A stretch of DNA of 64,000 nucleotides from Phyllobates terribilis (lineage: Eukaryota): assembly GCF_046119375.1 (NCBI RefSeq), contig NW_027362762.1:706304001-706368000 (forward strand), read 5' to 3'. Of the stretch, positions 9,601-63,080 are shown in pieces. The position numbers and the translations under genes are program-made. A model generated the notes under the pieces. That model worked only from the letters and a program-made list of their open reading frames with translations, did no database searches and had not been told where the DNA came from. The stretch's first letter is position 1, and every line of letters starts with the position of its first letter.

Positions 9601-10323
9601 CTCCAACCTCATCATCATCACCCTGTGCGTTATCACACCCGTCGTCCTCAGAGCCAACCTGTTCCTGCCCTGACAAAAAACTAAAGTTGTCGCTCCAATC
9701 AGGTATTTGAGTCTTATCATCGTCTTCCTCATTGTCTCCACCAACAGGAGTTACAGTTTGGGAATGAGGGTCTACATTATGGTCAGAACCTTCTGCGTCT
9801 GGTCCTGGATCCGACTCATAAATATTCTGGGCATCAGTGCAGATCATTTCCTCGTCTGGATTCACAGAAGCGCTGGAGTCGACCTCTGATTCCCAGGCTA
9901 TAGTATGAGTAAACAGCTCTGCAGACTCAACCATCTGTTCTACCTCATACTCAGACGGGTAGCTGGAGATTGGGAGCTGTGAGGAAGCAAATGCGATTGG
10001 GGTGACACCTTTGAGGACTGGAGTATTTGTGATGTTGAAGTTGATGTGGAGGAGAGCCCACTTAAAGGAGCACTTGATATCCGTTGAAGCACCTGCTGTT
10101 TTTGTGCCTCATCTGGAATTTGTAGCGATTGGCGTGGCCGTAAGAAAGGGATCTTATCACATTGTCCGCTAAAAGAAGTAGACATTTTAGTTTGGCTGGA
10201 AGATGGTCTTTCTTCTGCAGATGTTACTGTTGCTTTAACACCTACCCCACGGACACAACCTTTTTTCCCCTTCCCAACACGCCTATTCCCCTTTCCACCA
10301 GCAGCAGGCCTTTTTCCACTCAT
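6672..10323 (-). pseudogene. hAT transposase (BED zinc finger + DDE core + hATC dimerisation domain), frameshifted
   Basis: BED finger WAFF...CNIC...HMDMKH; catalytic motifs FTTDTWTS, DNAANL, CMAH, CDVPTRWNST; C-terminal WPELATYALEILSCPAASVLSERVFSAAG. Split across ORFs 9940-10323, 7775-9934, 7101-8234 and 6672-6971. Confidence 0.93.
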
Positions 10324-13602: not shown

Positions 13603-15674
13603 TTATAATGGATTCTCAGAGTGAACTATTCTCATGTTGCGAGAGAGGGGGGTATCCAGATTAGTGTTTATACTGCTCAGATGTTTAGAAATACGTCTCC
13701 TAAATTCTTGTATTGTTTTCCCTACATATATCATAGGGCAAGAGCAACATGCTATATATATGATCCCTTTGGTCTTACAATTTATATTATCCCTAATTTT
13801 ATATATCCTCTGATCAGATGGATTACTGAACTCACTAGTATTTGGTAAGTATCTGCAAAAACTGCATGTACCACAAGGCTTAGAGACTCCTGTAGTGTTG
13901 ATATTCCTAAGCGGATCTTCTTTGTTCTGGAAATGACTATGAGTGAGATATTCTCCCAAGTTCTTACCTCGTTTATATGTGATACTTGGATGTTTACTAA
14001 TCACATCTCTAATATCTGGGTCTGCTCTTAGTAATGGCCAGAATTTCCACATGATATTATAAATATCAGAGGTATGTTCATCATACATTCCTATTAGCCT
14101 AATCATTTTAGGACTGGAATTTTTTGGGGGGGGTATTAGTAACATGTCTCTATCACTCTTCTTGGCTCTATTGAAGGCTCTATAGAGGATTTTTTTAGGG
14201 TATCCTCTAGATGTAAATTTCTCAAAAAGATTTCTGCTCTCCCTAAAGAATGCTTCGTCAATGGAGCAGTTACGCCTTGCCCTCAGGTATTGGCCAACTG
14301 GAATACTGGCCTTTAAGGACGGTGGATGCCAACTTTTCCAATGAAGGAGATTATTGGTGGCCGTGGGCTTTCTATATATATCTGTAAGGAGGTTACCTTC
14401 TCTGTCTATAGAAATAGTCAAATCCAAAAAATTGATCCTGTTCAACCCTACCTCATAGGTGAAAAGCATTCCAATCTTAGTTTTGTTCAGGATGGCTACA
14501 AAATCTTCAAATATTTTGATGTCTCCTTCCCACAGAATCAATACATCGTCTATGTATCTCCCCCAGAATAAAATGTGACAAGTGAAAAAACTCAAATCTT
14601 TATTAAAAACTAAGGTGTCCTCCCACCACCCTAGAAAAAGATTTGCAAAACTTGGTGCACATGATGTACCCATGGCGGTGCCCTTTATCTGTTGATAGAA
14701 GGCACCATCAAAGGTAAAAAAGTTATGTGTTAAAGTAAATAATAAAAGTGACAGCAAAATATCATTATGTGCTTTAAAGTGCTTCAATTTAGTGGATAAA
14801 AAGTAAGATACAGCTGTGACGCCTAATTCATGAGAAATATTACTGTATAAAGCCTCTACATCGAGGCTGGTTAGTATTGTTTGTGGTGAGACTGTGACAT
14901 TACGTAGTTTTGAAACCATATCCTTAGTGTCTTTAACGTAGGAGGGGAGGGAGTGCACAAAGGGGGAGAGCATCTAATCAATGTATTGACTTATTCCTTC
15001 TGTGAGGCAGTTATTACCTGAGACTATAGGTCTCCCTGGTATTGGTCTTATTCTCTTATGCATCTTGGGTAATGCATAAAAGGTAGCCATTGTAGGGGTA
15101 GGGTTGAACAGAACCTTATATTCATCCTCAGTAATATAATCAGCGTCAAGGGCTTCCTTCAAAATTGATTGTAACTCTTGAGTAAATTTAACAGTGGGAT
15201 CCCTGAGTAACCGCTTATAAGTATCTTTGTCGTTAAGTAGATCTAGAACCATCTTCTTATAATCCACTACGTCCATAACAACAATGTTGTTCCCCTTGTC
15301 AGAGGGTTTAATAACAACATTGTTGTTTGCTTGCAATTCTTTAATTGCCTTTTCCTCCTCTCGACTCAAATTCTTATCCTTAGCAGGTCTCTTTTTAGAT
15401 AGCTTTTTTAGTTCTATCTATTAACAAAGGCATCAATGTTATGATATTGAGAGAAACTCGGAGTATTTTTACTTTTAGGTTTCAAGGAGGAAAAGGGGGG
15501 TGCAATAGATATTTGGCCAGTTTCATTATCATTTTCCAATGTCCCCAATGTTAAAATTGCTTCACTTTCATTTCTCTGATTCTTCAGAGGATCTCGATTT
15601 TTTTTTATTATATGGTATTTGTGGAGTGCAAGCTTTCTAGTGAAAAGATTCAAATCTTTTGTCCACATAAACAC
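13603..15674 (-). pseudogene. PLE reverse transcriptase-endonuclease ORF (interrupted by stops)
   Basis: Consecutive ORF segments 15414-15674, 14974-15369 and 13603-14973 carry the RT and GIY-YIG motifs. Confidence 0.9.
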
Positions 15675-17206: not shown

Positions 17207-18685
17207 TAGAGGCTAAATGACACCCAAAATGGCCGCCAGGTAGCTTTTATCACCTCTGTTTGGGCTCTAAGCCAATGTGTATTGTTGTAGCCATGTGCCA
17301 ATAGAATAGACTCCCTTATTTCCAATCATGAAGATCATATCATTATAATGTTACCTACAATTTAAATGATTGGAGGATAAAGCTGTCATTCAGGCCAGAA
17401 GGAACCACATTGGTAGAGATTGAAGCGATATATCAGCATTCTCATAATAGCCTGAATGCCTCAGTTTCAGGAACCAATCTGCACTAACTTACCTACATCC
17501 TATCCATTTGTGGAAGGTAGTGTTAAACGATTGCTGCACTTGCGTGATCAGCTGACTCAAAATAGGAGGGATTCATGTCATGGCCGTCACATGCTCCAAT
17601 CAAAACACGCCACATAAGCAAGGTCCTTTTCTTGATACGTATCATTTACTACGCCTGCACAATTTGTCCAAATCAATAGAGATGCATAACAGGACCTTTG
17701 CTTACTCCAATCAGATTAGGCCACATAGGCAAGGTCCTTTTCTTTATGCACATCAATTACTGCATCTACTCTAAGGAGTCCCCGGCCAATGGCCGGAGGA
17801 CCTCACCATATATAAGGCACCTCCTCCAAAATGGAGGTGCCTGAGCAATGTTGTTGCAAAGCCTTTCAACTCTGCTTCAGCCCTCAGGTCCCATTACCAG
17901 TTACCTGCTAGATTCCTGCTTCATACCTGCCTGTTACCTGCCTGATATCTGCTTACCTGCTTGCAATCCTGTGGTCCGACAGTCTGCCTACCAGCACCTG
18001 CCAGTCTGTCTATGGATCAGTCCGTCTGCGAACCAGGAAGTACCTGCCAGATACCTGCCTGATACCTGCCTGCCTGTCCAGAGACTCCTGCCCGCTCACC
18101 TGGGAGCGCTCACCTGCTACCTGCCAGCTAGCCTACCTGGAGGCTCAGCCGTCACTTGCCGTGACCACCTGCCTGTCCAGAGACTCCTGCCCGCTCACCT
18201 GGGAGCGCTCACCTGCTACCTGCCTGCTAGCCTACCTGGAGGCTCTGCCGTCACTTGCCGTGACCACCTGCCTGCCAGAGACTCTTGCCCGCTCACCTGC
18301 TACCTGCCTGCTTGCCTACCTGGAGGCTCTGTCGTCACTTGCCGTGACCACCTGCCTGTCCAGAGACTCCTGCCCGCTCACCTGGGAGCGCTCACCTGCT
18401 ACCTGCCTGCTAGCCTATCTAGAGACTCTTATCCTGCTGCCGTGACCATCCGCCTGTCAAGAGACTGTCCCCGTCACTTGCCGTGACCTCCTGTCCTTCT
18501 ACCCAGAGACTGTCCCCGTCACTTGCCGTGACTTCCTGTCCTTCTACCCAGAGACTGTCCCTGTCACTTGCCGTGACTACCTGCCCGCCTTCCCTGGGAG
18601 CCACCCGCTTCCTTACAAGGACTGCCCCCCTTGTATAGTTGCTCAGAGGTTCCACCTCCCAGACCCATTACAGTTTGCTCGGGCC

Positions 18686-19636
18686 ATGGAACCCGGTGGC
18701 ACCCAAGCTCCCTCGCTCTCGGACCTATGTCATGAACTTTCTCGTCAGAGGTCCCAACAGGAGTCCTTCCTGAGCCACCTGCGTAGTGTTAACTCCCGCC
18801 TGGACACACTGACTACCTCTTCGGGACCTGCTTCCAGTCGCATGACTCCTACCCCGGCAGCGTCGCTGCCCATCAATTCCATGGCATCTCTTCCCGGTCC
18901 CCGCCTCACCGCCCCGCCTCGTTTTGGCGGAGATCCCAGTCAGGCACGGGGCTTCATTAACCTGTGCACTCTGCACTTCGAACTGTTGGCACACCAGTTT
19001 TCCACCGACCGAGCCAAAGTAGCCTTCATCATGTCCCATCTCATGGGGGAGGCACTGGCTTGGCTAAATCCTCTATGGGAGAGAGGAGACCCCCTGGTTT
19101 CCAACCTGCCAGCCTTTCTCACGGCTTTCCGGAAGGTCTTCGACGAACCAGGACGGAGGACCTCATCCGCCTCATCTCTGCTACGCCTCCGCCAAGGAAG
19201 TCTCACCGTGGGCCAATATGCCATACGGTTCCGTACCCTTGCTTTGGAGCTTGCCTGGGATAACGACGCCCTGGTGTCCGTCTTCTGTGAGGGTCTGTCC
19301 GGCCGTATTAAAGATGAACTCGCCAGTCAGGACATTCCTACCACTCTCAACGACTTAATTACACTTGCCACCCGGATTGACATCCGGTTCCAGGAGCGCA
19401 CCAAAGAGGCCACCCGTGAGAGGAGGTTTCCACGCCTTGCCCCTACCTTCCAGAGACTCGTCACTTCCTCCGTTGCTCCCCCAGCGCACTCACCCGAGCC
19501 TATGCAGGTCGACCAGACCAAGATGGTCAAGACCTGTCAAGAATTACGCCGTGCCGAGGGGAGCTGCTTCTACTGTGGCAGTAAGGAGCACCGGATCCGT
19601 TCCTGCCCAGAGAGGTCGGGAAACGTCTGTGTCTAG
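18686..19636 (+). CDS. Gag of sushi-like retrotransposon (capsid + CCHC zinc knuckle), open
   Basis: 316-aa ORF with PPRFGGDPSQARGF, LRQGSLTVGQYAIRF and CFYCGSKEHRIRSC. Confidence 0.92.
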   Translation: MEPGGTQAPSLSDLCHELSRQRSQQESFLSHLRSVNSRLDTLTTSSGPASSRMTPTPAASLPINSMASLPGPRLTAPPRFGGDPSQARGFINLCTLHFELLAHQFSTDRAKVAFIMSHLMGEALAWLNPLWERGDPLVSNLPAFLTAFRKVFDEPGRRTSSASSLLRLRQGSLTVGQYAIRFRTLALELAWDNDALVSVFCEGLSGRIKDELASQDIPTTLNDLITLATRIDIRFQERTKEATRERRFPRLAPTFQRLVTSSVAPPAHSPEPMQVDQTKMVKTCQELRRAEGSCFYCGSKEHRIRSCPERSGNVCV

Positions 19637-19678
19637 GGTCGCTCAGAGAGGTCGCCCTAGACAGAAATAAACCCTCTC
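19618..19678 (+). promoter_or_regulatory. -1 ribosomal frameshift signal (G GGA AAC slippery site + predicted H-type pseudoknot)
   Basis: GGGAAAC at 19618-19624; stem 1 gtctaggg/ccctagac (19631-19638 / 19655-19662); stem 2 gagagg/cctctc (19646-19651 / 19673-19678). The pol frame is -1 to gag and open from 19618. Confidence 0.8.
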
Positions 19679-22600
19679 CATCTCTAATGCTGTCGGTCTC
19701 TATCATCTGCGGGGAGAACCGTTATTTTGAACTGGCTCAACTTGACTCTGGAGCTGCCGGAAATCTCATTTCTCAGTCCCTGGTAGAGAAATACCGCATT
19801 CCCACCCAACCTCTGGCTGTACCCTTATCTGTCGCCCCCATGGATGGGGGCCTCTTACCTCATCCCATCCCACTCATCACCGAATCCATAACTTTGCAGG
19901 TGGGAATGCTGCACTCTGAGAGCATCTTCTTTCATGTTCTGCCTGGACTCTCTCACGTCCTCTTGCTAGGCCTACCATGGCTCCAGAGACACGCACCCGT
20001 GCTTGATTGGCAGACCGGAGAAGTTCTTCGCTGGGGACAGGACTGCCATAAGACTTGTTTAGTTCCCGTTCATCCTACTCGTCCTTCTCCTACCCCCAGC
20101 CAATCTACCCGGCCTACCGGTTCCCTATTGGCCTTTTGCGGACGTCTTTAATAAAAGAGAAGCAGAGACATTACCCCCTCATAGACCATACGACTGCCCA
20201 ATTGACCTGATGCCCGGCGCTACTCCTCCCCGTGGGCGTATTTACCCTTTGTCCGCTGCTGAGACCCGGTCCATGTCTGAATATATTGAGGAGAATCTGG
20301 CCCGGGGATTTATCCAGAAATCTACCTCTCCGGCGGGAGCAGGCTTCTTCTTCGTCAAAAAGAAGGACGGCTCACTCCGTCCCTGTATAGACTATAGAGG
20401 CCTTAACCAGATGACAGTGAAGAATAAATACCCCCTTCCGCTCATTCCTGAATTATTTGACCGTCTGAGGGGAGCTAGAATCTTCACCAAGCTGGACCTC
20501 CGTGGGGCGTATAATCTGGTCCGTATCCGTCAGGGGGATGAATGGAAGACGGCATTCAACACCCGGGACGGTCACTATGAATACCTTGTAATGCCCTTCG
20601 GTCTCTGTAACGCTCCCGTCGTCTTTCAAGAGTTGGTCAATGACATCTTCTGTGACCTTCTCTACTCCTGCGTGGTGGTGTACCTGGACGACATCTTGGT
20701 CTTCTCTCCGGATCTTCTCACTCACCGGAGGGATGTTCGTCAGGTCCTGCTCAGGCAGAACCACCTCTACGCTAAATATGAGAAGTGCCTCTTTGAGCAG
20801 ACCTCGCTTCCGTTTCTGGGCTACATAATCTCTCAGACCGGCCTACAAATGGACCATGAGAAACTGTCTGCCATCCAGAAGTGGCCCCGACCAGAGGGGT
20901 TGAAGGCTATTCAGCGGTTCCTGGGCTTCGCCAACTACTACCGCCTCTTCATTCCGCACTTCTCTTCCCAGACTGCCCCTATCTCGGCGCTCACCCGTAA
21001 GGGCGCTAATCCCAGAGAATGGCCGCCCGAAGCAGAGGAGGCCTTCCTTTCCTTAAAATGAGCTTTTTCCTCCGCCCCTGTGCTGCATCGTCCGGACGGC
21101 AACAAACAATTCTTTCTAGAAGTCAACGCTTCCTCCTCCGGAGCCGGAGCTGTACTTACCCAAAAGTCGTCTTCCGGAAGAATGGTAACCTGCGGCTTCT
21201 TCTCCAAACTCTTCTCCTCATCTGAGCGCAACTATTCTATAGGAGACCGAGAATTGTTGGCCATTAAGCTGGCACTGGAGGAGTGGCATTACCTGCTCGA
21301 GGGGGCTCTTCACCCGGTAATAATTTACACGGACCACAAGAACTTGGCTTACCTCCAGAGCGCCCAGAGACTTAACCCGCGCCAAGCCCGGTGGTCCTTG
21401 TTCTTCGCCCGCTTTAATTTCATTCTACATTTTCGCCCGGCTGACAAATACATCAAAGCTGATGCCTTATCCCGATCCTTTTTGGTCTCTGATCTTGAGG
21501 AGGAGCCTAAACAGATCATCGACCCCGCCAAAGTAATGCAGGTGGCCCCCGTGAATCTAAATCGTCTTCCACCCGGTAAGACATTTCGTAACTGTTCCTG
21601 ATCGTGAGAGGGTTCTACACTGGGGACACTCGTCCAAGCTAGCTGGCCACGCTGGTCAGAAAAAGACCCTCCAGCTTATTTCCCGGCATTACTGGTGGCC
21701 TACCCTGCACAAGGACGTAATAGACTTTGTTTCAGCCTGTGAGTCCTGCGCCCGCAACAAGGTTCCGAGACATCTACCAGCCAGCCGTCTCCTTCCTCTT
21801 CCTGTACCTGCTGCCCCGTGGCAGCATATAGCTATGGACTTTATGACGGACCTCCCTGTCTCTGCCAGTTGTACGGTCATATGGGTGGTCGCTGACCGCT
21901 TTTCCAAAATGGCTCACTTTATTCCCCTGCCGGGTCTCCCGTCTGCATCAGAGTTAGCTAAAGACTTTATCCATCATGTCTTCCGTCTACACGGTCTTCC
22001 TCTCCACATCGTATCCGACCGAGGGGTTCAGTTCACCTCTCGTTTTTGGCGAGCCATGTGTAAACTGCTGGGGGTCACCTTGGACTTTTCTTCTGCATAT
22101 CACCCACAGTCCAATGGCCAAGTAGAACGGATCAACCAAATTTTAACCAGTTACCTCCGGCACTTTGTTAATGCTCACCATTCCGACTGGGTGGATCTTT
22201 TACCGTGGGCCGAATTTTCTTACAATAATCATGAGAGCGAATCTTCCTACAAATCCCCGTTTTTTGTAGTCTTCAGTCAGCATCCTCGGATCCCATTTCC
22301 CGTCTCCACCTCGGTGGACAATCCGGCTGCGGAATCTCTCGTTAACGAATTTTCCTCCGTTTGGGAAAGTACCAGATCCGCACTTCTTCAGTCATCCGAG
22401 CAGATGAAAAAAACAGGCTGACAAAAGACATCTGGATCCACCACAATTCCGTCCTGGAGATAAGGTCTGGCTCTCGTCCAAGTATGTCTGGCTCTCGTCC
22501 AAGTATGTCCGGCTCAAGATTCCTTCCTACAAGTTAGGGCCTCGGTTCATCGGCCCACTGGAAGTTATCAAACAAATCAACCCGGTGGCCTATAAATTGA

Positions 22601-27446: not shown

Positions 27447-29626
27447 ATAGATAATAGTTAGATATATGGACATAAAGATATATTGATAGATAATAGATAT
27501 ATGGATAGATAGATAGATATACAGTACAGACCAAAAGTTTGGACACACCTTCTCATTTAAAGATTTTTCTGTATTTTCATGACTATCAAAATTGTACATT
27601 CACACTGAAGGCATCAAAACTATGAATTAACACATGTGGAATTATATACTTAACAAAAAAGTGTGAAACAACTGAAAATATGTCTTATATATTGTCTTAT
27701 ATTCTAGGTTCTTCAAAGTAGCCACCTTTTGCTTTGATGACTGCTTTGCACACTATTGGCATTCTCTTGATGAGCTTCAAGAGGTAGTCACCGGAAATGG
27801 TTTTCACTTCACAGGTGTGCCCTGTCAGGTTTAATAAGTGGGATTTCTTGCCTTATTAATGGGGTTGGGACCATCAGTTGTGTTGTGCAGAAGTCTGGTG
27901 GATACACAGCTGATAGTCCTACTGAATAGACTATTAGAATTTGTATTATGGCATGAAAAAAGCAGCTAAGTAAAGAAAAACGAGGGGCCATCATTACTTT
28001 AAGAAATGAAGGTCAGTCAGTGCGAAAAAATTGGGAAAACTTTGAAAGTGTCCCCAAGTGCAGTTGCAAAAACCATCAAGCGCTACAAAGAAACTGGCTC
28101 ACATGAGGACCACCCCAGGAAAGGAAGACCAAGAGTCACCTCTGCTTCTGAGGATAAGTTTATCCGAGTCACCAGCCTCAGAAATCGCAGGTTAACAGCA
28201 GCTCAGATTAGAGACCAGGTCAATGCCACATAGAGTTCTATCAGCAGACACAACTCTTCAACAACTGTTAAGAGGAGACTTTGTGTAGCAGACCTTCATG
28301 GTAAAATAGCTGCTAGGAAACCACTGCTAAGGACAGGCAACAAGCAGAAGAGACTTGTTTGGGCTAAAGAACACAAGGAATGGACATTAGACCAGTGGAA
28401 ATCTGTGCTTTGGTCTGATGAGTCCAAATTTGAGATCTTTGGTTCCAACCACCGTGTCTTTGTGCGTAGCAGAAAAGGTGAACGGATGGACTCTACATGC
28501 CTGGTTCCCACCGTGAAGCATGGAGGAGGAGGAGTGATGGTGTGGGGGTGCTTTGCTGGTGACACTGTTGGGGATTTATTCAAAATTGAAGGCATATTGA
28601 ACCAGCATGGCTGCCATAGCATCTTGCAGCGGCATGCTATTCCATCCGGTTTGCGTTTAGTTGGACCATCATTCATTTTTCAACAGGACAATGACCCCAA
28701 ACACACCTCCAGGCTGTGTAAGGGCTATTTGAAGGAGAGTGATGGGGTGCTACACCAGATGACCTGGCCTCCACAGTCAGCAGACATGAACCCAATCGAG
28801 ATGGTTTGGGGTGAGCTGGACCGCAGAGTGAAGGCAAAAGGGCCAACAAGTGCTAAGCATCTCTGGGAACTCCTTCAAGATTGTTGGAAGACCATTTTCG
28901 GTGACTACCTCTTGAAGCTCATCAAGAGAATGGCAAGAGTGTGCAAAGCAGTCATCAAAGCAAAAGGTGGCTACTTTGCAGAACCTAGAATATAAGACAT
29001 ATTTTCAGTTGTTTCACACTTTTTTGTTAAGTATATAATTCCACATGTGTTAATTCATAGTTTTGATGCCTTCAGTGTGAATGTCCAATTTTCATAGTCA
29101 TGAAAATACAGAAAAAATTTTAAATGAGAAGGTGTGTCCAAACTTTTTGTCTGTACTGTATGAATAGATATATAGATAGATAGACAATATATATATGGAT
29201 AGATAAATAGATTTATAGATAGATAATAGTTAGATATATGGATATATAGATATATCGATAGATAATAGATATATGAATAGATAGATAGATAGATAGGTTA
29301 ATAGATATATGGATAAATATATAAATAACAGACATATGGATAGATAGATAGAGAGATAGATAATAGATATATGGATAGATAGATATATGGATAGATATAT
29401 GGATAGCTAGATATACATTTGCCGGCAATACATTGACGCTCAGCGTATTGCCGGCTGCTTGAGGTCAGCAGCTGCGCAGTGAGTATTTTTCCACGCTTGC
29501 CAATGAGTTGAACTCAGTTCAAATACTCACTGCGCAGCCGCTGACCTCAAGCAGCTGGAACACACGCAAAGCACTGATTATATATATCACATATTTATAT
29601 CTGTCTGTATGTCTATCTATTATCTA
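27447..29626. repeat. Degenerate (GATA)n/(TATC)n array split by the Tc1 at 27522-29158, with a fold-back core at ~29420-29560
   Basis: gata-rich runs at 27447-27521 and 29159-29415; tatc-rich run at 29580-29626. Confidence 0.85.
27522..29158 (+). mobile_element. Full-length Tc1 element (DD34E), transposase disrupted
   Basis: Long TIRs cagtacagaccaaaagtttggac; TA both sides; ORFs 28006-28233 and 28405-28995 ([20 protein letters not shown]). Confidence 0.96.
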
Positions 29627-47404: not shown

Positions 47405-48998
47405 CAGTGCCTACAAGTAGTATTCAACCCCCTGCAGATTTAGCTGGTTTGATAAGATGCAAATAAGTTAGAGCCTTCAAACTGCAAACGAGAGTAGGTT
47501 TTATGAACAGAAGCATAAATCTTACAAACCAAAAAGTTATGTTGCTCAGTTGAATTTTATTAAATTTTAAACATAAAAGTGTGGGTCAATTATTATTCAA
47601 CCCCTATGTTTAATATTTTGTGGAATAACCCTTGTTTGCAATTACAGCTAATAATCGTCTTTTATAAGACCTGATCAGGCCGGCACAGGTCTGTGGAGTT
47701 ATCTTGGCCCACTCCTCCATGCAGATCTTCTCCAAGTTATCTAGGTTCTTTGGGTGTCTCATGTGGACTTTATTCTTGAGCTCCTTCCACAAGTTTTCAA
47801 TTGGGTTAAGGTCAGGAGACTGACTAGGCCACTCCAACACCTTGACTTTTTCCCTCTTGAACCAGGCCTTGGTTTTCTTGGCTGTGTGCTTTGGGTCGTT
47901 GTCTTGTTGGAAGATGAAATTACGACCCATCTTAAGATCCTTGATGGAGGAGCGGAGGTTCTTGCCCAAAATCTCCAGGTAGGCCGTGCTATCCATCATT
48001 CCATGGATGCGGACCAGATGGCCAGGCCCCTTGGCTGAGAAACAGCCCCACAGCATGATGCTGCCACCACCATGCTTGACTGTAGGGATGGTATTCTTGG
48101 GGTCGTATGCAGTGCCATCCAGTCTCCAAACGTCACGTGTGTGGTTGGCACCAAAGATCTCGATCTTGGTCTCATCAGACCATAGAACCTTGAACCAGTC
48201 TGTCTCAGAGTCCTCCAAGTGATCATGAGCAAACTGTAGACGAGCCTTGACATGACGCTTTGAAAGTAAAGGTACCTTACGGGCTCGTCTGGAACGGAGA
48301 CCATTGCGGTGGAGTACGTTACTTATGGTATTGACTGAAACCAATGTCCCCACTGCCATGAGATCTTCCCGGAGCTCCTTCCTTGTTGTTCTTGGGTTAG
48401 CCTTGACTCTTCGGACAAGCCTGGCCTAAGCACGGGAGGACACTTTCAAAGGCTGTCCAGGCCGTGGAAGGCTAACAGTAGTTCCATAAGCCTTCCACTT
48501 ATGGATGATGCTCCCAACAGTGGAGACAGGTAGGCCCAACTCCTTGGAAAGAGTTTTGTACGCCTTGCCAGCCTTGTGACCCTCCACGATCTTGTCTCTG
48601 ATGGCCTTGGAATGCTCCTTTGTCTTTCCCATGTTGACCATGTCTGAGTGCTGTTCACAAGTTTGGGGAGGGTCTTAAATAGTCAGAAAAGGCTGGCAAA
48701 AGAGATCTTTAATCCACACATGTGAAGCTCATTATTCTTGGTGCCTGAACTACTTCTTAATACTTTAGGGGGACCAAACAGAATTCTTGTGGTTTGAGGG
48801 GTTGAATAATAAATGACACTCTGAATTAACTTTTAACGTTTTAAGAAAAAAACAAAACAAAAAACAAAAACAATATTTGCTGCAGTGCATTTCCCACTTC
48901 CAGGCTGATCTACAGTACAAATGTCACAATGCCAAGTTAATTCCGCATGTGTCAACCAGCTAAATCTGCAGGGGGTTGAATACTACTTGTAGGCACTG
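47405..48998 (-). mobile_element. Full-length Tc1 element; transposase has a single premature stop
   Basis: TIR cagtgcctacaagtagtattcaacccc; TA TSD; ORFs 48426-48641 and 47610-48359 are in the same frame, separated only by TAG at 48426-48428. Confidence 0.95.
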
Positions 48999-54863: not shown

Positions 54864-55080
54864 TAGAGATGAGAAAACATTTCAATGTTCGGTTAGGAAA
54901 TGTTCGCCGCATATTTAGACATTTGCCAAATTTATTTGTCGAACATTCGTCAAAAATTTCCAAACACCATAGGATTCAATGGGGGGACAAAAAAAAAGCA
55001 TATACAACACCTTCAAACAGGTCCAAAAGCTGCCAAAACACATCAAATTAGGGGTAGACACCAGGAAAGTGCCATCAATT
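54864..55080. mobile_element. hAT terminal fragment
   Basis: TAGAGATGAG terminus followed by gttcg/cgaac-rich sequence similar to 2250-2430. Confidence 0.65.
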
Positions 55081-55084
55081 GACC

Positions 55085-55447
55085 CAGAGTACAAGTACTA
55101 TAATTATTATTACTATTACAGCGACATTTATTCCGTGGCACTTTACATGTGAAAAGGGGTCACTGACTGGTACAAGAGGAGAGAGCACCCCACCTGCGAG
55201 GGCACACAAACAATCTACAAGGGATGAGGATACAGTAGGTCAGGGTACAGCTAGTCATGCAGTGGTATGCAGGAGCGAAGGTTACCGCAGATTGTATGCT
55301 TGTCACAAAAAGTGGGTCTTCAGCTTCCTTTTCAAGGTTTCCACGGTAGGCGACAGTCTGATGTGTTGGGGTACAGCATTGTCACAGTAGGGCAGATGCA
55401 CCGGACTAATCTTCTGAAAGTCTAAATCATGGTAAGCTTCTAGGAGC
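55085..55447 (-). mobile_element. L2/CR1-type LINE 3' end fragment
   Basis: HIRLSPTVETLKRKLKTHF terminal motif, then a tgtaaagtgccacggaataaatgtcgctgtaatagtaataataat tail. Confidence 0.75.
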
Positions 55448-55672
55448 TCTAAGGCAGCGCTAGTCATCATGTTGGGGGACACTCGCTGCACCAGGTCAAT
55501 TAAACACGCCAGCCACGTTTTTCCAGTTTTCACAATCCAGCAGTTTATTGCACTTCATAACTGCTTATCACACAGTCCATCTTAGTGGCTCTCCGGCACC
55601 GGCATGTTTAGCCCATTCCTTAGGGACCTATCATCTGTCATTGTCACTGACTTCGTCAAGTCACATTTCCGG

Positions 55673-55790
55673 GTCGTAACCTTGTCAGACCTTCCCCGCT
55701 CCCAGCGGTCAGTCGTAACCTTGTCAGACCTCCCCCACTCCCAGCGGTCAGTCGTAACCTTGTCAGACCTCCCCCCACTCCCAGCGGTCC
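55673..55790. repeat. 39-bp tandem triplication spanning the putative PPT/3' LTR junction
   Basis: gtcgtaaccttgtcagacc...cccagcggtc units start at 55673, 55712 and 55751. Confidence 0.9.
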
Positions 55791-56049
55791 ATACAGCAGT
55801 GTGACTCACACGCCCTGGTATCTAAGGTCTGGTTAGACTCCGTACTGTCCCGTGCTCTATTGGGTCATTTGTATGGGCCTCTCAAACCTGAGTTACTGGA
55901 GGTCTCACTACCTCTAAACCCACGCCCACTACTCTCAGGACATCTTGAAAGGTCCCTAACTTCAGCTGTAGCTGTTCTGTTATTTAGGGGGCCCTTCTCT
56001 GTCTGGTCTCACAATTTCTAGACGGCTGCCATCTTCTGCTGCTCAGGCG

Positions 56050-56609
56050 ATGCAGCCTTTCCATTTGCAGTCTGGCGAGATTCAACTGTTCTACCTCTCG
56101 CAGGTAGGTCACTCGGTACTCCATCAGCATGCGTATATATGCAAGATTTTCTTCCTTTCCTACAGCGGAGAATGACACCATGCCGTCTTCATCTGGTATC
56201 CAGTACTGACGATCACGTGGACTGCTTACTTTCATCACGCCAGACTTCTTTACCATCATTTGCATGGCTTGGCCATTTCTCCCAATGAGCTTTCTCACCA
56301 GAACCTGAGGCACCCGGATGACCTCTTCCCGCAGACTGTGAGCTTTTCTCATCAGCTCCAGTTGTCTAACAGCTAGTTCCGTCTTCAACCGGAGAAACCG
56401 CTGCGTGCGAATACATCGTCAGTGCATGTCACTTAGGATCGCCACCCTCTTCACTGTGACTTCGGTCGTGGACAAGACCACCAGCTGTTTAGCTTCTGAG
56501 GTCGAGTACACCTTACAGGCTCCACGGCCTTCTTAAACTCTTCATGCACGGACTCACTGGTGCATTCTTCTCTCAAATCCTCGGGTACATCTATGAGGCA
56601 CTTGTACCG
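56050..56609 (-). pseudogene. FXR1: FXR1/FMR1-family-derived segment (KH0 + KH2, KH1 absent)
   Basis: YKCLIDVPEDLREEC...HEEFKKAV, VTVKRVAILSDMH and IRVPQVLVRKLIGRNG...KSGV...EDGMVSF...EYRVTYLREVEQL match FXR1 FKCTVDVPEDLREAC / TVKRVNILSDMH / QVPRNLVGKVIGKNG...EYHIAYLKEVEQL as recalled. Paralog choice (FXR1 vs FMR1/FXR2) is tentative. Confidence 0.8.
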
Positions 56610-57182
56610 AGGGGTTTCTGTCTCACCAGTGGTCTCCAAACGATCATCTGGCTCAGGTTTCAGGGGCAACTGACTTTCAGCTTCTTCACCCTGTATGCTT
56701 CCCCTGAGCTGACTCACAGCAACAAATTCACGAACTTTCGTCTTGACCACTTCCATTTCATATTTTTCTTCTGTTAACACTCTCTTAGCTCTCCTAAGGT
56801 CCCCCTTCTCATGGTATAAGGGAGTGAGTGCAACTTGTTTGCCCTTTTCCTTCTCCAAGGAGGCCTCGTTCACTAAGTGACACTTTGCTAGGCGACCTTT
56901 GAGCTTGAAAACTTTTTCCTCTAGCTCAGCTACTCACCTTTCAGCAGCCCCTCTCTGAAGCTCTTCCTGCTTCAACTGCTCCTTTAACAGTAGAGTTCTC
57001 TCAGACCTCTCTGTCTCCAATGTACCCACTCGGCTCTCAACAGCCAGTCTCTCAAGCTTCTCTTGCTTCAAATAGGCTTGTAGTGTCTCCTTGAGCTCCT
57101 TAATCTCGGCTCTTACATCCACCGAATCATCCGAGCTCGCATTATTCAAGGAGGTATTTGCTTCACACCTCCCATCTCCAGT

Positions 57183-57905
57183 GGCCAACTCCTGGCCCTG
57201 GTCTGTGGCTTCTCCGATAGACTCCTCCATCTGTTTCCGCTCAGCTTCCATTTTGCTGATTCTTTCCTTAAGGCACGACTCTGCCCTCTGGAGATTATCA
57301 CAGAACGTCTGCAGCTCCTACACCTGAGCTTCCAGACCTAGGGTCTTTCTGCGGAGATCATCATTTTCTTCACGGGCGTCCTGCAGAGTGGTCTCAACCA
57401 CTTGGCGCATGTGCTCTGCATCCGCCTTATCATCCTCTAGTTTTTCTTTAACCCTGAGGAGATCCTCATAGTCTCTCTTAATTTGTTGCAGTTCCCGACT
57501 GCGTTCACCATATTCCTTCTTGGATTCACACAGCTCCCAGTTGAACTGTTTGCGCAGTCATTCTAGGTTTTGTTCATGCCCAGAAACTTCATCCTGCTGC
57601 CCCTCCTTCTCAAGCTTCAACTGCAAAACCTCCTCCTTGATTTTGCGGCGGTCCTCCTTAATTTCCTGGAACATTTCCTTCCATTGGTTAACTTCCTCGC
57701 TGCTTTCATCCAGTTCTCGCTGCAAGTTCCTTACAACTTGGTTTATTTTCTGCCGTTCAGACTCCAGGCTCAGCTGGTCTGACACGTTCCCCAAGTTTTC
57801 CCTTCGTTGCTGCACGTCACTCTGATACTGCTGCCTGATAGGCTCCAGCTCTTGGTCATGACTGGCTGCCTCCTCTTTCAGGGCTGTCAGATCCAGATCC
57901 TTCCG
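57183..57905 (-). pseudogene. CGN: Cingulin rod-domain-derived segment
   Basis: LTALKEEAASHDQELEPIRQQYQSDV...SLESERQKINQVVRNLQRELDESSEEVNQWKEMFQ and VVETTLQDAREENDDLRRKTLGLEAQV...LQRAESCLKERISKMEAERKQMEESIGEATDQGQEL closely match vertebrate (Xenopus) cingulin as recalled. Confidence 0.82.
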
Positions 57906-59120
57906 TCTCAGTACTGTGCCGGAGGTTGCTACTGGCAACGTCACCTCCTCTTCTGCCTCTAAAGGAGGATCCACACTTGGAACAAAGGCATAGAGCATTA
58001 TATTTTCTTTATTTTCACTTTCAGTAAAGACTATAGGATCAACCTTTTTGTGGCCCTTGCGCCGTCGACGACGAGAAGGGGACTTTCTCTCCTCGTCTAG
58101 CTCCTCCTGACTGACTCTCCTTCTACTTTCGTAGTGTCACCGTCAACTACGGGGTTTGTGTCACTCCCCATGGTGTTGAGGACTAACAGGTCACCTCCCA
58201 CCTTGACGTCAACTCCTTCTACTGGAGCTACCCCGTTATCAACGGTCAAATTGTCATTTTTAGGCGGTACCAACCCACAACCAGTAACAAATTTTGGTTT
58301 TCTAAACTCCACGCTCTTGTGAAAATCCGCCCCTTTTTAGACTCTGCCCCCTTTGGGACACCCACACCTGTAGTGGAATTTTTACAAAAAAAATCAGCAG
58401 TAATCTTAGGACTCAGTTCACAACATCTCTTACCACCTCCCCGGGCACTATGGGACAATACTTGCGCCCCCGGAGAGTTCACAGAATGGTCCACTGCCGC
58501 CATTCAATACATTGCCAACAGCTCCTGCTGCTCCTGCACCATGTCCTGTTGCTGTATTTTCTCAAATACCTGCTTCTGTGCTTTTGACAGGCACTTTAAT
58601 CGCTCAATAGCTTCAGTCTCATTTGCTGCTCCTTTCACAGCCATCCTTATCAGCTCCTGCATTTCTTCGGGACACTCCATCATGCCGAAGAGCGATTGCA
58701 CTCGGTCATCCAACCACTTCTCTATTCCGTCTGGAGATACTGCTCCATTCATAGTCATCGCGGTACACTGTTCATAATAGACACTTAACGCCGCTCTCCC
58801 TGAAAAAATTTTTGTGGCCCCGCCGAGCCACAGCAAACCAGGTTTGAGTGTGAGGACAATTTTTGTAACCCCCCGAGTTACAGGCAGATGCTTTAATTTT
58901 CGTGACCCCGCCGAGTTACAGGCAGATGGTTTAATTTTTGTGACCCCGCCGAGCCACAGCAAACCAGGTTTGAGTGCGAAGACAATTTTCGTAACCCTGC
59001 CGAGTTACAGCAAGATGCTTGTATCCACACTCATCGTCCTGTGCCGTAGCCCCTAGCAACCGGGCTGCAGTTGCCCCTAGCAACCGGGCTGCAGTTGCCC
59101 CTAGCAACCAGGCTGCAGTT

Positions 59121-59138
59121 GCCCGCATTCTCGAACCA
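59121..59138 (-). other. Primer-binding site, tRNA-Ala(AGC)-like
   Basis: The + strand reads gcccgcattctcgaacca versus the recalled tRNA-Ala 3' end GCCCGCATTCTCCACCA; directly adjacent to the LTR end. Confidence 0.75.
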
Positions 59139-59832
59139 CAAGTAAGACAGCGCTAGTCATCATGTTGGGGGACACTCGCTGCACCAGGTCAATTAAAGCA
59201 CGTTACACGTTTTTCCAGTTTTCACTATCCAGCAGTTTATTGCACTTCATAATTGCTTATCACACAGTCCATCTTAGTGGCTCTCCGGCATGTTTACACA
59301 CATAACATCTGGGTGCCTTTCAAGTGGCAGACAGGCCCACTTGGCTCCAGTTACAGCCTTCAGCAAATTCACTTATATCAATGTCCATATAACAAAGTGT
59401 TTTTACCTTTGCCGGGTCGTAGCTGCTTCAGTCCGCTTTGTTTTGCCACAGCTGTGGCTCTAAGACTTACCAAACGTGGTCTCCAGCCCTTTTGCCCTCC
59501 AAGGCTGCTGGCATCTCTCACACACAAGGATCCAGCCTTCATACCTTCCAGGCTTCAGCAGGCTCCACCAGGCCTCACCAGGCCTCACTAGGCCTCACTA
59601 GGCCTCACACTAACAGTGTCCCACACAAGGAACAAGCCTCACGCCTTTCACACCCTGTCTCAGATCTACCAGGGTTTATATATCTTCCAGTGCACACACA
59701 GGACCTGTGCTGATGTCAGTCATGTGATCAGACCTTCTGTGTGCATAGGACCTGTGCTGATGTCACAGTCATGTGACCAGTCACCTGGGGGGGAGGTACA
59801 TGGTCAGTCAAAACACACCCTGGACCATTACA

Positions 59833-59982
59833 GTAATGCCGCAAGCCGCTGCTTTACAGAGCACACAACTGAGTAGATTAACCCCTGCACTGATTAATAT
59901 GAAGGCGAAAGGCTTCTATTGACTGCAGGACTGGGAGGAATCAGACGCTGCGGTCTTCTGGCTCCTCTCTGTTACCGTGACT
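59833..59982 (-). mobile_element. 5' tip of an LTR of the family at 46888
   Basis: Reverse complement gtcacggtaacagagaggagccagaagaccgcagc...gcaggggttaatct matches 46889-47030. Confidence 0.75.
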
Positions 59983-61297
59983 CCTTGCAAGCTTCAACAC
60001 AATGTTCACAAGGTAGACAGCAGCAGTGGTCAGTCTCCTAGACAACAAGCTAACATCTGCAAATAGTTTGTATGTTCTCCCCGTGTTTGTGGGGTTTTCC
60101 CCCAGGTTCTCCGGTTACCTCCTCAGTAAAATAGCAGCCATACAGGAGTGTTCACAGTTCAAAAAATTAGGGTCTGACACCACCATTTCCATGGCCAACA
60201 GATTGGAGATGGTGGTGTTCAACCTCTTAGCTTTTTCATGTGTAGGAGGAAACAATTTTTTACATGACCACAAATGCGGGACCGAGAGCTGGCTGCATTG
60301 CTGAGAGAGGGTGGAGCACGGTGAAATGGACAAACTGCTAGACCGTTAGTGAGGTGCAGGTGCAGCTGTTACAGTGGATTGAGAAAGATGTGGTGTGCTC
60401 GGTGAAACAAACACAGCAGGCATGTCCCCTTCCATTACAGCTGACGGGCTCTCACTCAGCCTGATTGGAGCGGTTAGAGAACCAGAAGTTTTGCGATGGG
60501 AGACCTGCATGACAATAATTGACATGGTAACAGAGGAGGAGGAAGAAGCAGCAGATGCGGTTGATGGCGCGGCTGGTGGTTGTTGAGGTCCGTGATTTAT
60601 CACCGTGAGATTGCTAGAGTAACGCATGTTGATTGCGCATGTGAAGGTTCATGCATGTAGTAGTCAAATTATTGCACTTTCTCCCTCTAATGAGTTTTTA
60701 TCGCAAAGTTTGCAGATAACGTAAGCTGGCTCATCCTTTGCGGTCTCAAAAAGGCCCAGGCTAGACAACCCTAGCCACCCCTGCGAGCTGCAGACCCACG
60801 ACCGATGCTGGTCACTGCCACGGTTGTCGCTAAGAATGCAGTGCTCCTCATGCTTGCATCATTCCATGTCTGCACCATAGGACGCAACTTAACCTCCTCA
60901 TCTTTGTCCTCCTCTACCTCCTCAGATGAGCTACTCAGCTGTGTGCCTCTGGGTTCACACCAAGTTGGATGTGCAACCTCATCATCAGCCAATGTGTTAT
61001 CCCATTCATCGCCCTCAGAGTCACCCTCCTCTTCTTCTTGCACTGACAGCACAGTACAGTTGAAGGTCAGGAACCTGCTTGAACCCAACCTTTTTTTCCC
61101 CCTGTATGGAGAACAATGCCCCAAAAAATTTTAAGCGGAAATGTAGTCTGTTTTATATACCAATTTTGAGTTTATCATGTCTGTGTACCCCTGTGTGGAG
61201 TACAATATCTGCACCAAAAAAATTATTTCACTAGAGTATAACTATTGGAAAGGAGACCAAAACCTCTTCCACTACAGTGAACCCAGCACATTGAGAC

Positions 61298-61797
61298 CCA
61301 ATCAGGAGTGTTCACATTTCCCTAAATTAGGGCCTAACACCACCAAAGTGGCAGCAATTTTACTAAAGTAGAAATAGTAGAATTAGGACCGACACTTCTT
61401 ACCCTACAGCCAACCTATTAGATGGTAACCCAATCAGGAGTGTTCACATTTCCCAAAATTAGGTCCTAACACTAACGAAGTGGCATCAATTTCACTAACG
61501 TAGAAATAGTATAATTAGGATCGACACTTCTTCCCCTACAGCCAACCCAGTAGATGGAGACCCAATCAGGATTCCCCACATTTCCAAAAATTAGTGGCAG
61601 ACACCAACAAAGTGGCATCAATTTCACAACAGTAGAAATTGTACTATTAAGACCGATACCTCTTCCACTACAGCCAACCCAGTAGATGGAGACCCAATCA
61701 GGAGTGTTCACATTTCCCTAAATTAGGGCCTAACACCACCAAAGTGGCAGCAATTTCACTACAGTAGAAATAGTATAATTAGGACCGACACTTCTTA
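61298..61797. repeat. ~132-bp tandem repeat (about 4 units)
   Basis: ccaatcagga unit starts at ~61298, 61430, 61562 and 61693. Confidence 0.85.
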
Positions 61798-63080
61798 ATG
61801 GATCCCTTTCCAGGGCGGGAAGCATCTGATTTAGTTGATGGGGCAGCTGATGGTTGTTGAGGTCCGCTGGTCCGCATTTCAGACCGGTGAGACTCCCAGC
61901 GTAACCCATGTTGTTTGCGCATGTGAACGTTCATGCATGTACTCTAGTAGTCAAATTATTGCAGTTTTTCTCTCTACTGAGTTTTTTATCACAAAGTTTG
62001 CAGATAATGTGAGTTGGCTCATCCTTTGCGGTGTCAAAAAAGGCTCAGGCTAGGCAACCCTTGCCGCCCCTGCGAGCTGCAGACCCACAACCACTGCTGG
62101 CCACAGTTGTGGCTAAGGATGCAGTGTTCCTCATGCTTGCATCACTCCATGTCTGCACCGTAGGGCGAAAGGTAACCTCCTCGTCACCCTCCTCCACCTC
62201 CTCAGATGAGCTACTCGGCTGCGTGACTCTGGGTTCACACCAAGTAGGTTCTTCAACCTCATCATCCAATGTGTTATCCCATTCCTCGTCCTCAGAGTGA
62301 CCCTTCTCCTCTTGTTGCCCTGACAGCATAGTAAAGTCCGCATGAGCCTCAGGTATCTGAGTCTCATCAGGATCACCTCCCTCTCCTGTGCTTAATGTCT
62401 GGTCATGAGGGTCAGGAACCTGCTCGGACCCTACTCCGTCCTGCCCCGAATCCAACCTGAAAAAATTTTGGGCATCGGTGCAGATTCTTTCCTCTTCTTC
62501 TTGACTCTGTGAGTATTTGGAGTACACTTCTGATGCCTATGGGTATAGGAGAGGTGAACAGTTCTACAGACTCGCCCATCTGTGGTTCGCTACAGTCAGT
62601 TGGGCACTTGGACAGTTGTGACACGGGGGGAAGCAAGGGTAATTGGGGTGCTACCTCTGTGGACTGTACTGTGTGTGATGTTGAGGTGGAGGAAGCAGAG
62701 GAGAGGCCACTAGAAGCAGCGTTTGCCATCCACTGGAGCACCTGCTCTTTCTGACCCTTATCATCAAGGCATATCGCTGTGTGGCTACCAAACAAAGGGA
62801 GTGGAGTAGCCATCCACTAACAGAAGTTGTCAGTTGTCTTCGGATAGGACATGACGGTGTTGGTTCACTGGTGTTTTCACTAACATTACCACCTACCCCA
62901 TGTATACCTTGAACACCAAGCATATTCCCTCTTCCACCACGACCTCGCTTTTTCCACTTATGTTGCTCAGATACTGTGGTAGGAGCATGCTAATAGCAAA
63001 ACAAAATCAAAATTAGATTTTTTTGGGACTCTGCCTAGCAAGACAAAAAAAAAAAAATTTTTTTTACTCTGAAAATGGAC

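Follow-up and report, generated by a model that had tools for sequence, protein, structure and literature searches.

A high-copy LTR retroelement family of poison frogs with a probable host-mRNA chimera as its only gene

Non-autonomous long terminal repeat (LTR) retrotransposons such as TR-GAG and BARE-2 carry a Gag-type open reading frame (ORF) only, are mobilised in trans and can outnumber the helper element, and in the non-LTR element LINE-1 the ORF1p protein consists of a coiled coil and, after it, an RNA-binding domain made up of an RRM and a C-terminal domain. The element described here lies in a 64,000-nucleotide stretch of Phyllobates terribilis DNA (RefSeq assembly GCF_046119375.1, contig NW_027362762.1, positions 706,304,001 to 706,368,000 of the forward strand), which will be named hereafter the window. 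The unit at 59858-55448 on the minus strand of the window is very probably one of the decayed copies of an abundant, non-autonomous LTR family of poison frogs that has a chimera of host mRNAs as its sole gene. Its closest described counterparts come from LTR-mediated retroposition, in which an LTR retrotransposon comes to contain, joined together, intron-free partial copies of at least two unlinked host genes (Tan et al. 2016, PMC5131818), the described mechanism being template switching (PMC5131818). The maize element Bs1 is an earlier case (Jin & Bennetzen 1994; Elrouby & Bureau 2010; as cited in PMC5131818). Capture of host mRNAs by endogenous retroviruses (ERVs) has been described as well, and crocodilian ERVs carry KIT-ligand or nectin3 (PMC4299795).

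Structure and abundance of the element

The element was found integrated in the window as a single LTR retroelement unit, and three further Phyllobates terribilis loci (L001, L002 and L003), reached through proteins annotated as 'cingulin-like', hold it at 85-93% nucleotide identity; the L003 copy matches window positions 58645-55712 at 93% over 2,941 bp. In a DNA run of the source species (X1), 24,218 contigs matched positions 55000-60200 at 88% identity or more; the identity was at least 99% for 3,805 of them and 95-99% for 7,551. Three other species labels (B, C and D) also have runs containing the element, which makes at least four labels in all. The family is therefore a high-copy one, with hundreds to thousands of copies in several poison-frog species, and the LTR-flanked relatives that the initial annotation had proposed to look for do exist. 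The copies differ from one another through many internal deletions, and later insertions break some of the Phyllobates copies, namely one of ~10 kb inside the frame of L001 (9688-19632) and one of ~4 kb inside the 3′ LTR of L003 (10399-14409).

The non-coding parts of the window copy, in element order, are as follows:

59859-59862, minus strand: target-site duplication, upstream copy, GCTC in element sense (direct read; the same 4 bases follow the end of the 3′ LTR)
59143-59858, minus strand: 5′ LTR, complete, ~715 bp, TG..CA (full-length alignment to both LTRs of L002 and L003)
59120-59140, minus strand: primer-binding site, tRNA-Ala, variant form TGTGGTTCGAGAATGCGGGCA (comparison with a gar tRNA-Ala(AGC) prediction and with L001)
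58800-59119, minus strand: untranslated leader with short tandem repeats (conserved in L001-L003)
55448-55598, minus strand: 3′ LTR remnant, last ~150 bp, with AATAAA at 55549-55544 (95% identity to 59290-59143)
55444-55447, minus strand: target-site duplication, downstream copy, GCTC (direct read)

The 4-bp duplication GCTC was thus read from the letters on both flanks of the window copy, and the corresponding duplications of the Phyllobates copies are also of 4 bp (GTAC for L003 and ATAT for L002). The 5′ LTR of the window copy begins with TGTAAAGC and contains, both in sense orientation, a TATA box (TATATAAA, 59682-59675) and a poly(A) signal (AATAAA, 59241-59236). The LTR pair of L002 is likewise of the TG..CA type, its two members being 96-98% identical to each other. 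A scan of the LTR for promoters and terminators of bacterial type, a scan type that is not applicable here, gave no match. The primer-binding site was predicted from a gar tRNA-Ala(AGC) gene that lies inside the gar locus L005, giving TGGTGGAGAATGCGGGCG; L001 agrees with this prediction in 17 of 18 bases, located 2 bases past the LTR end, and the site in the window is a variant retaining the 12-nt core GAGAATGCGGGC. Direct repeats in the leader include 58807-58871 and 58933-58997.

The initial annotation had described the coding region as lying between an LTR with a primer-binding site and a polypurine tract with a second LTR. The LTRs, the primer-binding site and, in addition, the target-site duplication are present, but the window copy has no polypurine tract and lacks most of its 3′ LTR. 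A deletion of ~700 bp, with its junction at 55608/55598, took out the polypurine tract together with the final stretch of the frame and ~565 bp at the start of the 3′ LTR. Of this lost sequence, L003 retains 134 bp and the polypurine tract, which reads AGAGGGGGGGGA ahead of the 3′ LTR, and the tract is present in L002 as well. The 3′ LTR remnant differs from 59290-59143 by 5 substitutions and 3 indels, and the 150-bp direct repeats 55450-55598 and 59143-59290 are nothing but the LTR ends.

Composition and origin of the reading frame

The only gene of the element is a frame of ~925 codons, running from an ATG at 58758-58756 to a stop at 55986-55984; over the family the gene length is about 925-1020 codons. 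The coding sense is the minus strand throughout 55984-58758, and the frame is intronless. Neither the pieces of the window copy nor the long ORFs of L003 matched a Pfam family of reverse transcriptase, RNase H, integrase, gag or protease; for the first three, the initial annotation had likewise seen no motif in this frame. Its parts, from the N-terminal end, are the following:

57915-58758, minus strand: N-terminal part, ~280 codons (one frame in L002; here with a stop at 58506-58504 and losses at ~58339 and ~58115)
57181-57914, minus strand: cingulin rod (coiled coil), with internal deletions relative to cingulin (HMMER, tblastn, blastp; stops at 57560-57558 and 57320-57318)
56814-57180, minus strand: linker, coiled-coil-like, perhaps further cingulin to ~57036 (an alignment with caecilian cingulin reaches 57036; stop at 56936-56934)
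56685-56813, minus strand: LONP1 (mitochondrial Lon protease) fragment, 43 amino acids, human ~475-517 (phmmer against the PDB)
56390-56640, minus strand: FXR1 KH0 domain (Pfam KH_9; frame cut by the loss at ~56524 and the stop at 56421-56419)
56098-56349, minus strand: FXR1 KH2 domain with the GxxG loop retained, IGRNG (PDB 2qnd, alignment, AlphaFold2)
55650-56097, minus strand: FXR1 C-terminal parts (blastp to Dendrobates tinctorius FXR1), with 39-nt tandem repeats at 55673-55789

A cingulin rod segment had been recognized from the letters alone, and its identity was confirmed by an exhaustive HMMER search among 1.84 billion representative proteins, in which a 192-residue piece (57561-58136, minus strand) obtained 32 matches. 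The names of the ten best matches were all looked up, and all ten were cingulin, with no myosin or other coiled-coil protein among them; they came from frog, caecilian, lungfish, shark, sturgeon, gar and bichir, the top one being Pseudophryne corroboree cingulin (E 2.6e-30, 49% identity). Over 116 amino acids, the Pseudophryne protein and an unbroken Phyllobates copy share 64.7% identity. By tblastn, cingulin residues ~565-944 lie, with gaps, on 57914-57180 and possibly down to 57036. Only these residues are represented, that is, the globular head, which interacts with ZO-1, and the tail are absent. Pfam yielded generic coiled-coil noise only on this region, and for the linker no match was obtained apart from the caecilian cingulin alignment. 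The N-terminal ~280 residues had no relative in Pfam, the homologue search, the ESM Atlas or blastp against cingulins and FXR1s, and gave only chance or repeat-artefact matches against PDB sequences; the first 200 residues of the frame showed no similarity to cingulin heads by blastp, and an AlphaFold2 model of this part, built without an alignment, had a predicted local distance difference test (pLDDT) value of 40.

Two RNA-labelled runs (X12 and X17), whose contigs are without strand and whose depth is low over most of the element, were 20-150 times deeper over the blocks 57181-57497 and 57602-57782 than over the rest. The contigs on these blocks are ~90% identical to the element and continue past the block ends into unlike sequence that codes for coiled coil, and the sharp edge at 57181 is seen in them too. 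The deep blocks are probably host cingulin mRNA. If so, position 57181 would mark a capture breakpoint, and the cingulin part would be ~10% diverged from its parent as compared to ~25% for the FXR1 part, which could suggest stepwise capture or very unequal rates. As separate observations on the same region, runs X10 and X15, which bear other species labels, reach a depth of up to ~300,000 over 57130-58095 and 59002-59175, which is hundreds of times deeper than over the FXR1 part, and the deep region extends upstream of the cingulin homology; a second, commoner repeat family sharing these segments, or a capture-bait effect, is possible. Furthermore, 'cingulin-like' gene models of NCBI, with 437, 141 and 241 amino acids, sit on Phyllobates element copies. 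The annotation of element copies as 'cingulin-like' genes of Phyllobates terribilis (P0002, P0003 and P0022) is misleading.

The LONP1 fragment matched 16 PDB chains at E 7e-7 to 4e-6, with 25 of 43 residues identical by phmmer, and it is kept in L001 and L003. No Lon or AAA Pfam family was found for the AAA+ ATPase and protease domains of Lon, of which the element holds these 43 residues only, and a homologue search with the LONP1/KH0 piece gave no match in its length range. The FXR1 part is identified more fully. The KH0 domain of FMRP (KH_9, PF17904) scored 31.8 bits on the piece 56454-56933 (minus strand) and 79 bits, as a whole domain, in L003, the curated cut-off being 24.2 bits; against PDB sequences the KH0 piece matched FMRP KH0 (4qvz) at E 1e-4. 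The KH2 piece (55987-56418, minus strand) matched the FMRP KH1-KH2 crystal construct 2qnd at E 4e-15, its Pfam KH_1 scores (18.8-21.0 bits) being slightly below the 21.5 cut-off, and the residues G114, N116 and G117 of KH2 are conserved in the alignment. When the 433-residue ORF of an unbroken Phyllobates copy served as query, the best 120 matches were all named FXR1, with frogs leading, so the KH region had been rightly assigned to FXR1. An AlphaFold2 model of the FXR1 module, built with an alignment, has a mean pLDDT of 76.6 and two KH-type folds, for which the top Foldseek matches were FMRP KH1-KH2 (2qnd) and FMRP KH0 (4qvz; rmsd 2.7 Å over 77 residues).

In terms of Dendrobates tinctorius FXR1, the element holds residues ~122-210 (KH0), ~270-375 (KH2) and then 482-543, the stretch between ~375 and 482 being poorly alignable. 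KH1 is absent from the alignment to this protein. No match to the Agenet/Tudor domains was found, and FXR1 homology begins at residue ~110-122. The C-terminal part gave weak Pfam matches to FXMRP1_C_core and FXR_C1. FXR1 C-terminal sequence runs on beyond 55984 in another frame (~55980-55650), and other copies read on past this point. The shift of frame comes from the loss of a base at ~55997; the stop at 55984 is therefore a trait of the window copy or its subfamily and not the original end of the frame.

The protein identity of the FXR1 part to every vertebrate FXR1 is 46-51% (50-51% for frogs), and its nucleotide identity to host FXR1 exons is 71-79%, whereas the FXR1s among themselves show a mean column identity of 78% in a full-length alignment. 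The argument from protein-level divergence, which the initial annotation had applied to both host genes, therefore holds for FXR1, a highly conserved family, but is weak for cingulin, since the likely host mRNA is ~90% identical and the rod evolves fast.

Exon maps were taken from the Dendrobates tinctorius FXR1 gene (L004, 84 kb) and the gar cingulin gene (L005). The element is contiguous over the host FXR1 junctions at residues 171/172, ~293, 330 and 359, and its cingulin part maps to gar cingulin residues 437-800, crossing at least five exon junctions without an intron. This means that the host-derived segments came from spliced mRNA, as had been proposed for FXR1 and cingulin. The loss of KH1 joins residue 210, an exon end, to residue ~270, and the next mapped exon starts at residue ~267; the loss is thus within ~3 codons of the skipping of a single host exon (residues 211-267). 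With three parental genes and contiguity over host exon junctions, the locus corresponds to a chimeric retrocopy in the sense of Tan et al. 2016. The chimera could have arisen by template switching of reverse transcriptase between the element RNA and host mRNAs co-packaged in a helper's particle. The initial proposal of two fused host mRNAs named two true sources, cingulin and FXR1, but missed LONP1 as a third, as well as the ~280 N-terminal amino acids without a relative.

The window copy is dead. Its frame is interrupted by five stops (58506-58504, 57560-57558, 57320-57318, 56936-56934 and 56421-56419), all of which are sense codons in other copies (two of them arose by a change from CGA to TGA), and by 1-nt losses at four places (~58339, ~58115, ~56524 and ~55997), besides the ~700-bp deletion. 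The single frameshift first reported at ~56523 is real, with 1 nt lost at ~56524, but it is only one of these lesions.

Selection on the frame, proposed role and alternatives

Ratios of nonsynonymous to synonymous substitution (dN/dS) were obtained by the Nei-Gojobori method for L003 paired with the window copy, L002 and L001, the three long ORFs of L003 being used as a frame guide only. For the LONP1 and FXR1 part, dN/dS was 0.34-0.45 in frame, with bootstrap 95% intervals below 1, versus 0.87-1.66 in the two shifted frames. That is, this part was under purifying selection while the family diversified. With the whole frame pooled, the ratio was 0.53 in frame versus 0.90 and 0.75 in the shifted frames. 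The KH module is clearly constrained, but for the rest of the frame constraint is weak or unproven, so the initial view that the chimera had evolved as a coding unit stands for the LONP1 and FXR1 part but finds little support in the cingulin and N-terminal parts.

The element has kept what retrotransposition needs in cis: the LTRs bring a TATA box and a poly(A) signal, a primer-binding site for tRNA-Ala follows, and other copies also have a polypurine tract. Given the lack of gag and pol, its copying must rely on the enzymes of some helper element, which would act on it in trans. The predicted protein could self-associate via the cingulin coiled coil and bind RNA via KH0-KH2; it might then coat or chaperone the element's own RNA and aid its entry into the helper's particles. 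By analogy with Gag and ORF1p, we tentatively suggest that the chimera may serve the element as an RNA coat or chaperone. A further-reaching and rather doubtful idea is that a gag-less LTR element built a Gag substitute from host parts and outcompetes its helper for packaging. Such a substitute would account for the purifying selection on the KH module as well as for the very high number of copies, and the family would then be a natural example of cellular genes giving rise to a new capsid or chaperone function in a retroelement.

Several results weigh against reading the locus as part of a family that lives by its chimeric gene. Selection is weak or unproven for the cingulin part (0.47-0.69 in frame versus 0.60-0.94 shifted) and for the N-terminal part (0.55-0.96, with uninformative shifted frames), and every pair shares L003 as the reference copy, so that the estimates are not independent. 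No element-specific transcription was seen in the two RNA-labelled runs, in which depth tracks DNA depth at a flat ratio, U3 included. Within the window, there was no other match that could represent a helper with the same LTR or primer-binding site. A complex prediction for two copies of the L003 coiled-coil ORF scored 0.30 against a mark of 0.32 and counts neither way. Moreover, the base that keeps the frame accounts for only ~30% of source-species contig depth at 56521, in KH0, and for ~20% at 55994. From these minority shares, amplification seems to have continued in a frameshifted subfamily, so the frame would not have to be intact in cis; this subfamily may have used proteins supplied in trans.

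The chief rival to a Gag-like role is that the frame is a neutral passenger, junk from template switching in an element whose spread depends on nothing but its LTRs, primer-binding site, polypurine tract and leader. We consider this somewhat unlikely. It would fit the frameshifts at ~56524 and ~55997, which are apparently present in most of the source-species contig depth, as well as the closeness of the cingulin and N-terminal dN/dS values to the shifted-frame controls, the internal deletions that separate the copies and the lack of specific expression. It agrees poorly with the low in-frame ratio of the LONP1 and FXR1 part, whose intervals exclude 1 and whose shifted controls are near 1, and with the retention of the GxxG loop and KH folds; moreover, the FXR1 part is ~50% diverged at the protein level from a very conserved parent, yet other copies hold stop-free frames of 340-430 codons. 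Alternatively, the protein might act for or against the host, either as a decoy or dominant-negative competitor of RNA control linked to FXR1/FMRP or after domestication by the frog. The KH0 and KH2 folds of FXR1 without Agenet/Tudor domains are the make-up expected of an RNA competitor lacking the other contacts of FXR1, but a domesticated gene should form one conserved locus rather than hundreds of decaying LTR-flanked copies, and no specific expression was seen; taken together, such a function appears improbable.

Two other readings concern the nature of the locus itself. Cargo of a DNA transposon (Pack-type piggyBac) is a very remote alternative to an LTR element, considering that here and in L001-L003 the cargo lies between LTRs together with a primer-binding site, a polypurine tract and 4-bp duplications. 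The decay of the window copy is all that would speak for a one-off fusion of processed pseudogenes or an assembly artefact at this locus. That explanation has practically no weight left: thousands of contigs from independent runs and species match the element, the gene junctions and LTRs are common to three Phyllobates terribilis loci, and the target duplication is intact, so that the contig counts and L001-L003 refute it.

The window contains further features outside the element. A G+C-rich block holds a Ty3/gypsy element (17848-22421, plus strand) with Retrotrans_gag, Ty3_capsid, RVT_1 (107 bits) and rve. Considered as a helper, this element at 17.8-22.4 kb was rejected, since neither its LTR nor its primer-binding site nor its protein is related to that of the chimeric element. 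An ORF of 456 amino acids (13603-14973, minus strand) has weak RVT_1 and GIY-YIG matches, a pair typical of Penelope-like elements, and one of 719 amino acids (7775-9934, minus strand) has a BED zinc finger. Remnants of Tc1/mariner-type transposases (DDE_3, HTH_Tnp_Tc3_2) lie at 28405-28995 (plus strand) and 47610-48359 (minus strand). Finally, a duplicated block of ~1.28 kb at 60545-62337 (60545-61060 versus 61819-62337, 79-91% identical) encloses a 132-bp tandem array at 61225-61884.

Relation to described systems

Like TR-GAG and BARE-2, the frog element combines LTRs, a primer-binding site and a polypurine tract with one ORF and no pol; the ORF of those elements is a true Gag, however, whereas that of the frog element consists of cingulin, LONP1 and FXR1 pieces. 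With LINE-1 ORF1p there is a functional analogy only, in that a coiled coil and an RNA-binding domain are encoded by a retroelement; the two are not homologous, and for the frog protein oligomerisation and RNA binding are predicted. The family offers a system for asking whether a retroelement can recruit host domains for the job of Gag or ORF1p, and also how non-autonomous elements feed the very large, repeat-rich genomes of dendrobatids.

No publication was found that links either cingulin or FXR1 to a retroelement, and neither is named in the genome paper of Oophaga pumilio, so the chimera itself was, as initially stated, without a description that we could find; the capture of several mRNAs by LTR elements, on the other hand, has been described (PMC5131818, PMC4299795). 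The cases of LTR-mediated retroposition share with the frog family a mosaic of host genes inside an LTR element without coding capacity of its own, and their unit is transcribed from the LTR and able to retropose again non-autonomously (PMC5131818). They are single or low-copy loci, whereas the frog family counts hundreds to thousands of copies in several species, and, unlike them, part of the frog frame shows purifying selection. Maize Bs1, as far as it is presented in PMC5131818, keeps part of gag, whereas the frog element has no recognisable gag and holds three host genes in one long frame. In the capture of host genes by retroviruses and ERVs, including the acutely transforming retroviruses, a spliced host mRNA likewise replaces viral coding sequence, the product depends on a helper and purifying selection is possible (PMC4299795); there, however, one host gene stands beside remaining viral genes in few copies, whereas the frog element is a multi-gene mosaic with no viral gene. 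Thus, the kind of event is known from Bs1, from LTR-mediated exon shuffling and from retroviral transduction, and what is new is the scale, the gag-less frame of three genes and the signal of selection. That is, the frog family departs from known capture in having three host sources, in the replacement of all element proteins, in its hundreds or thousands of copies across species and in the constraint on its RNA-binding part.

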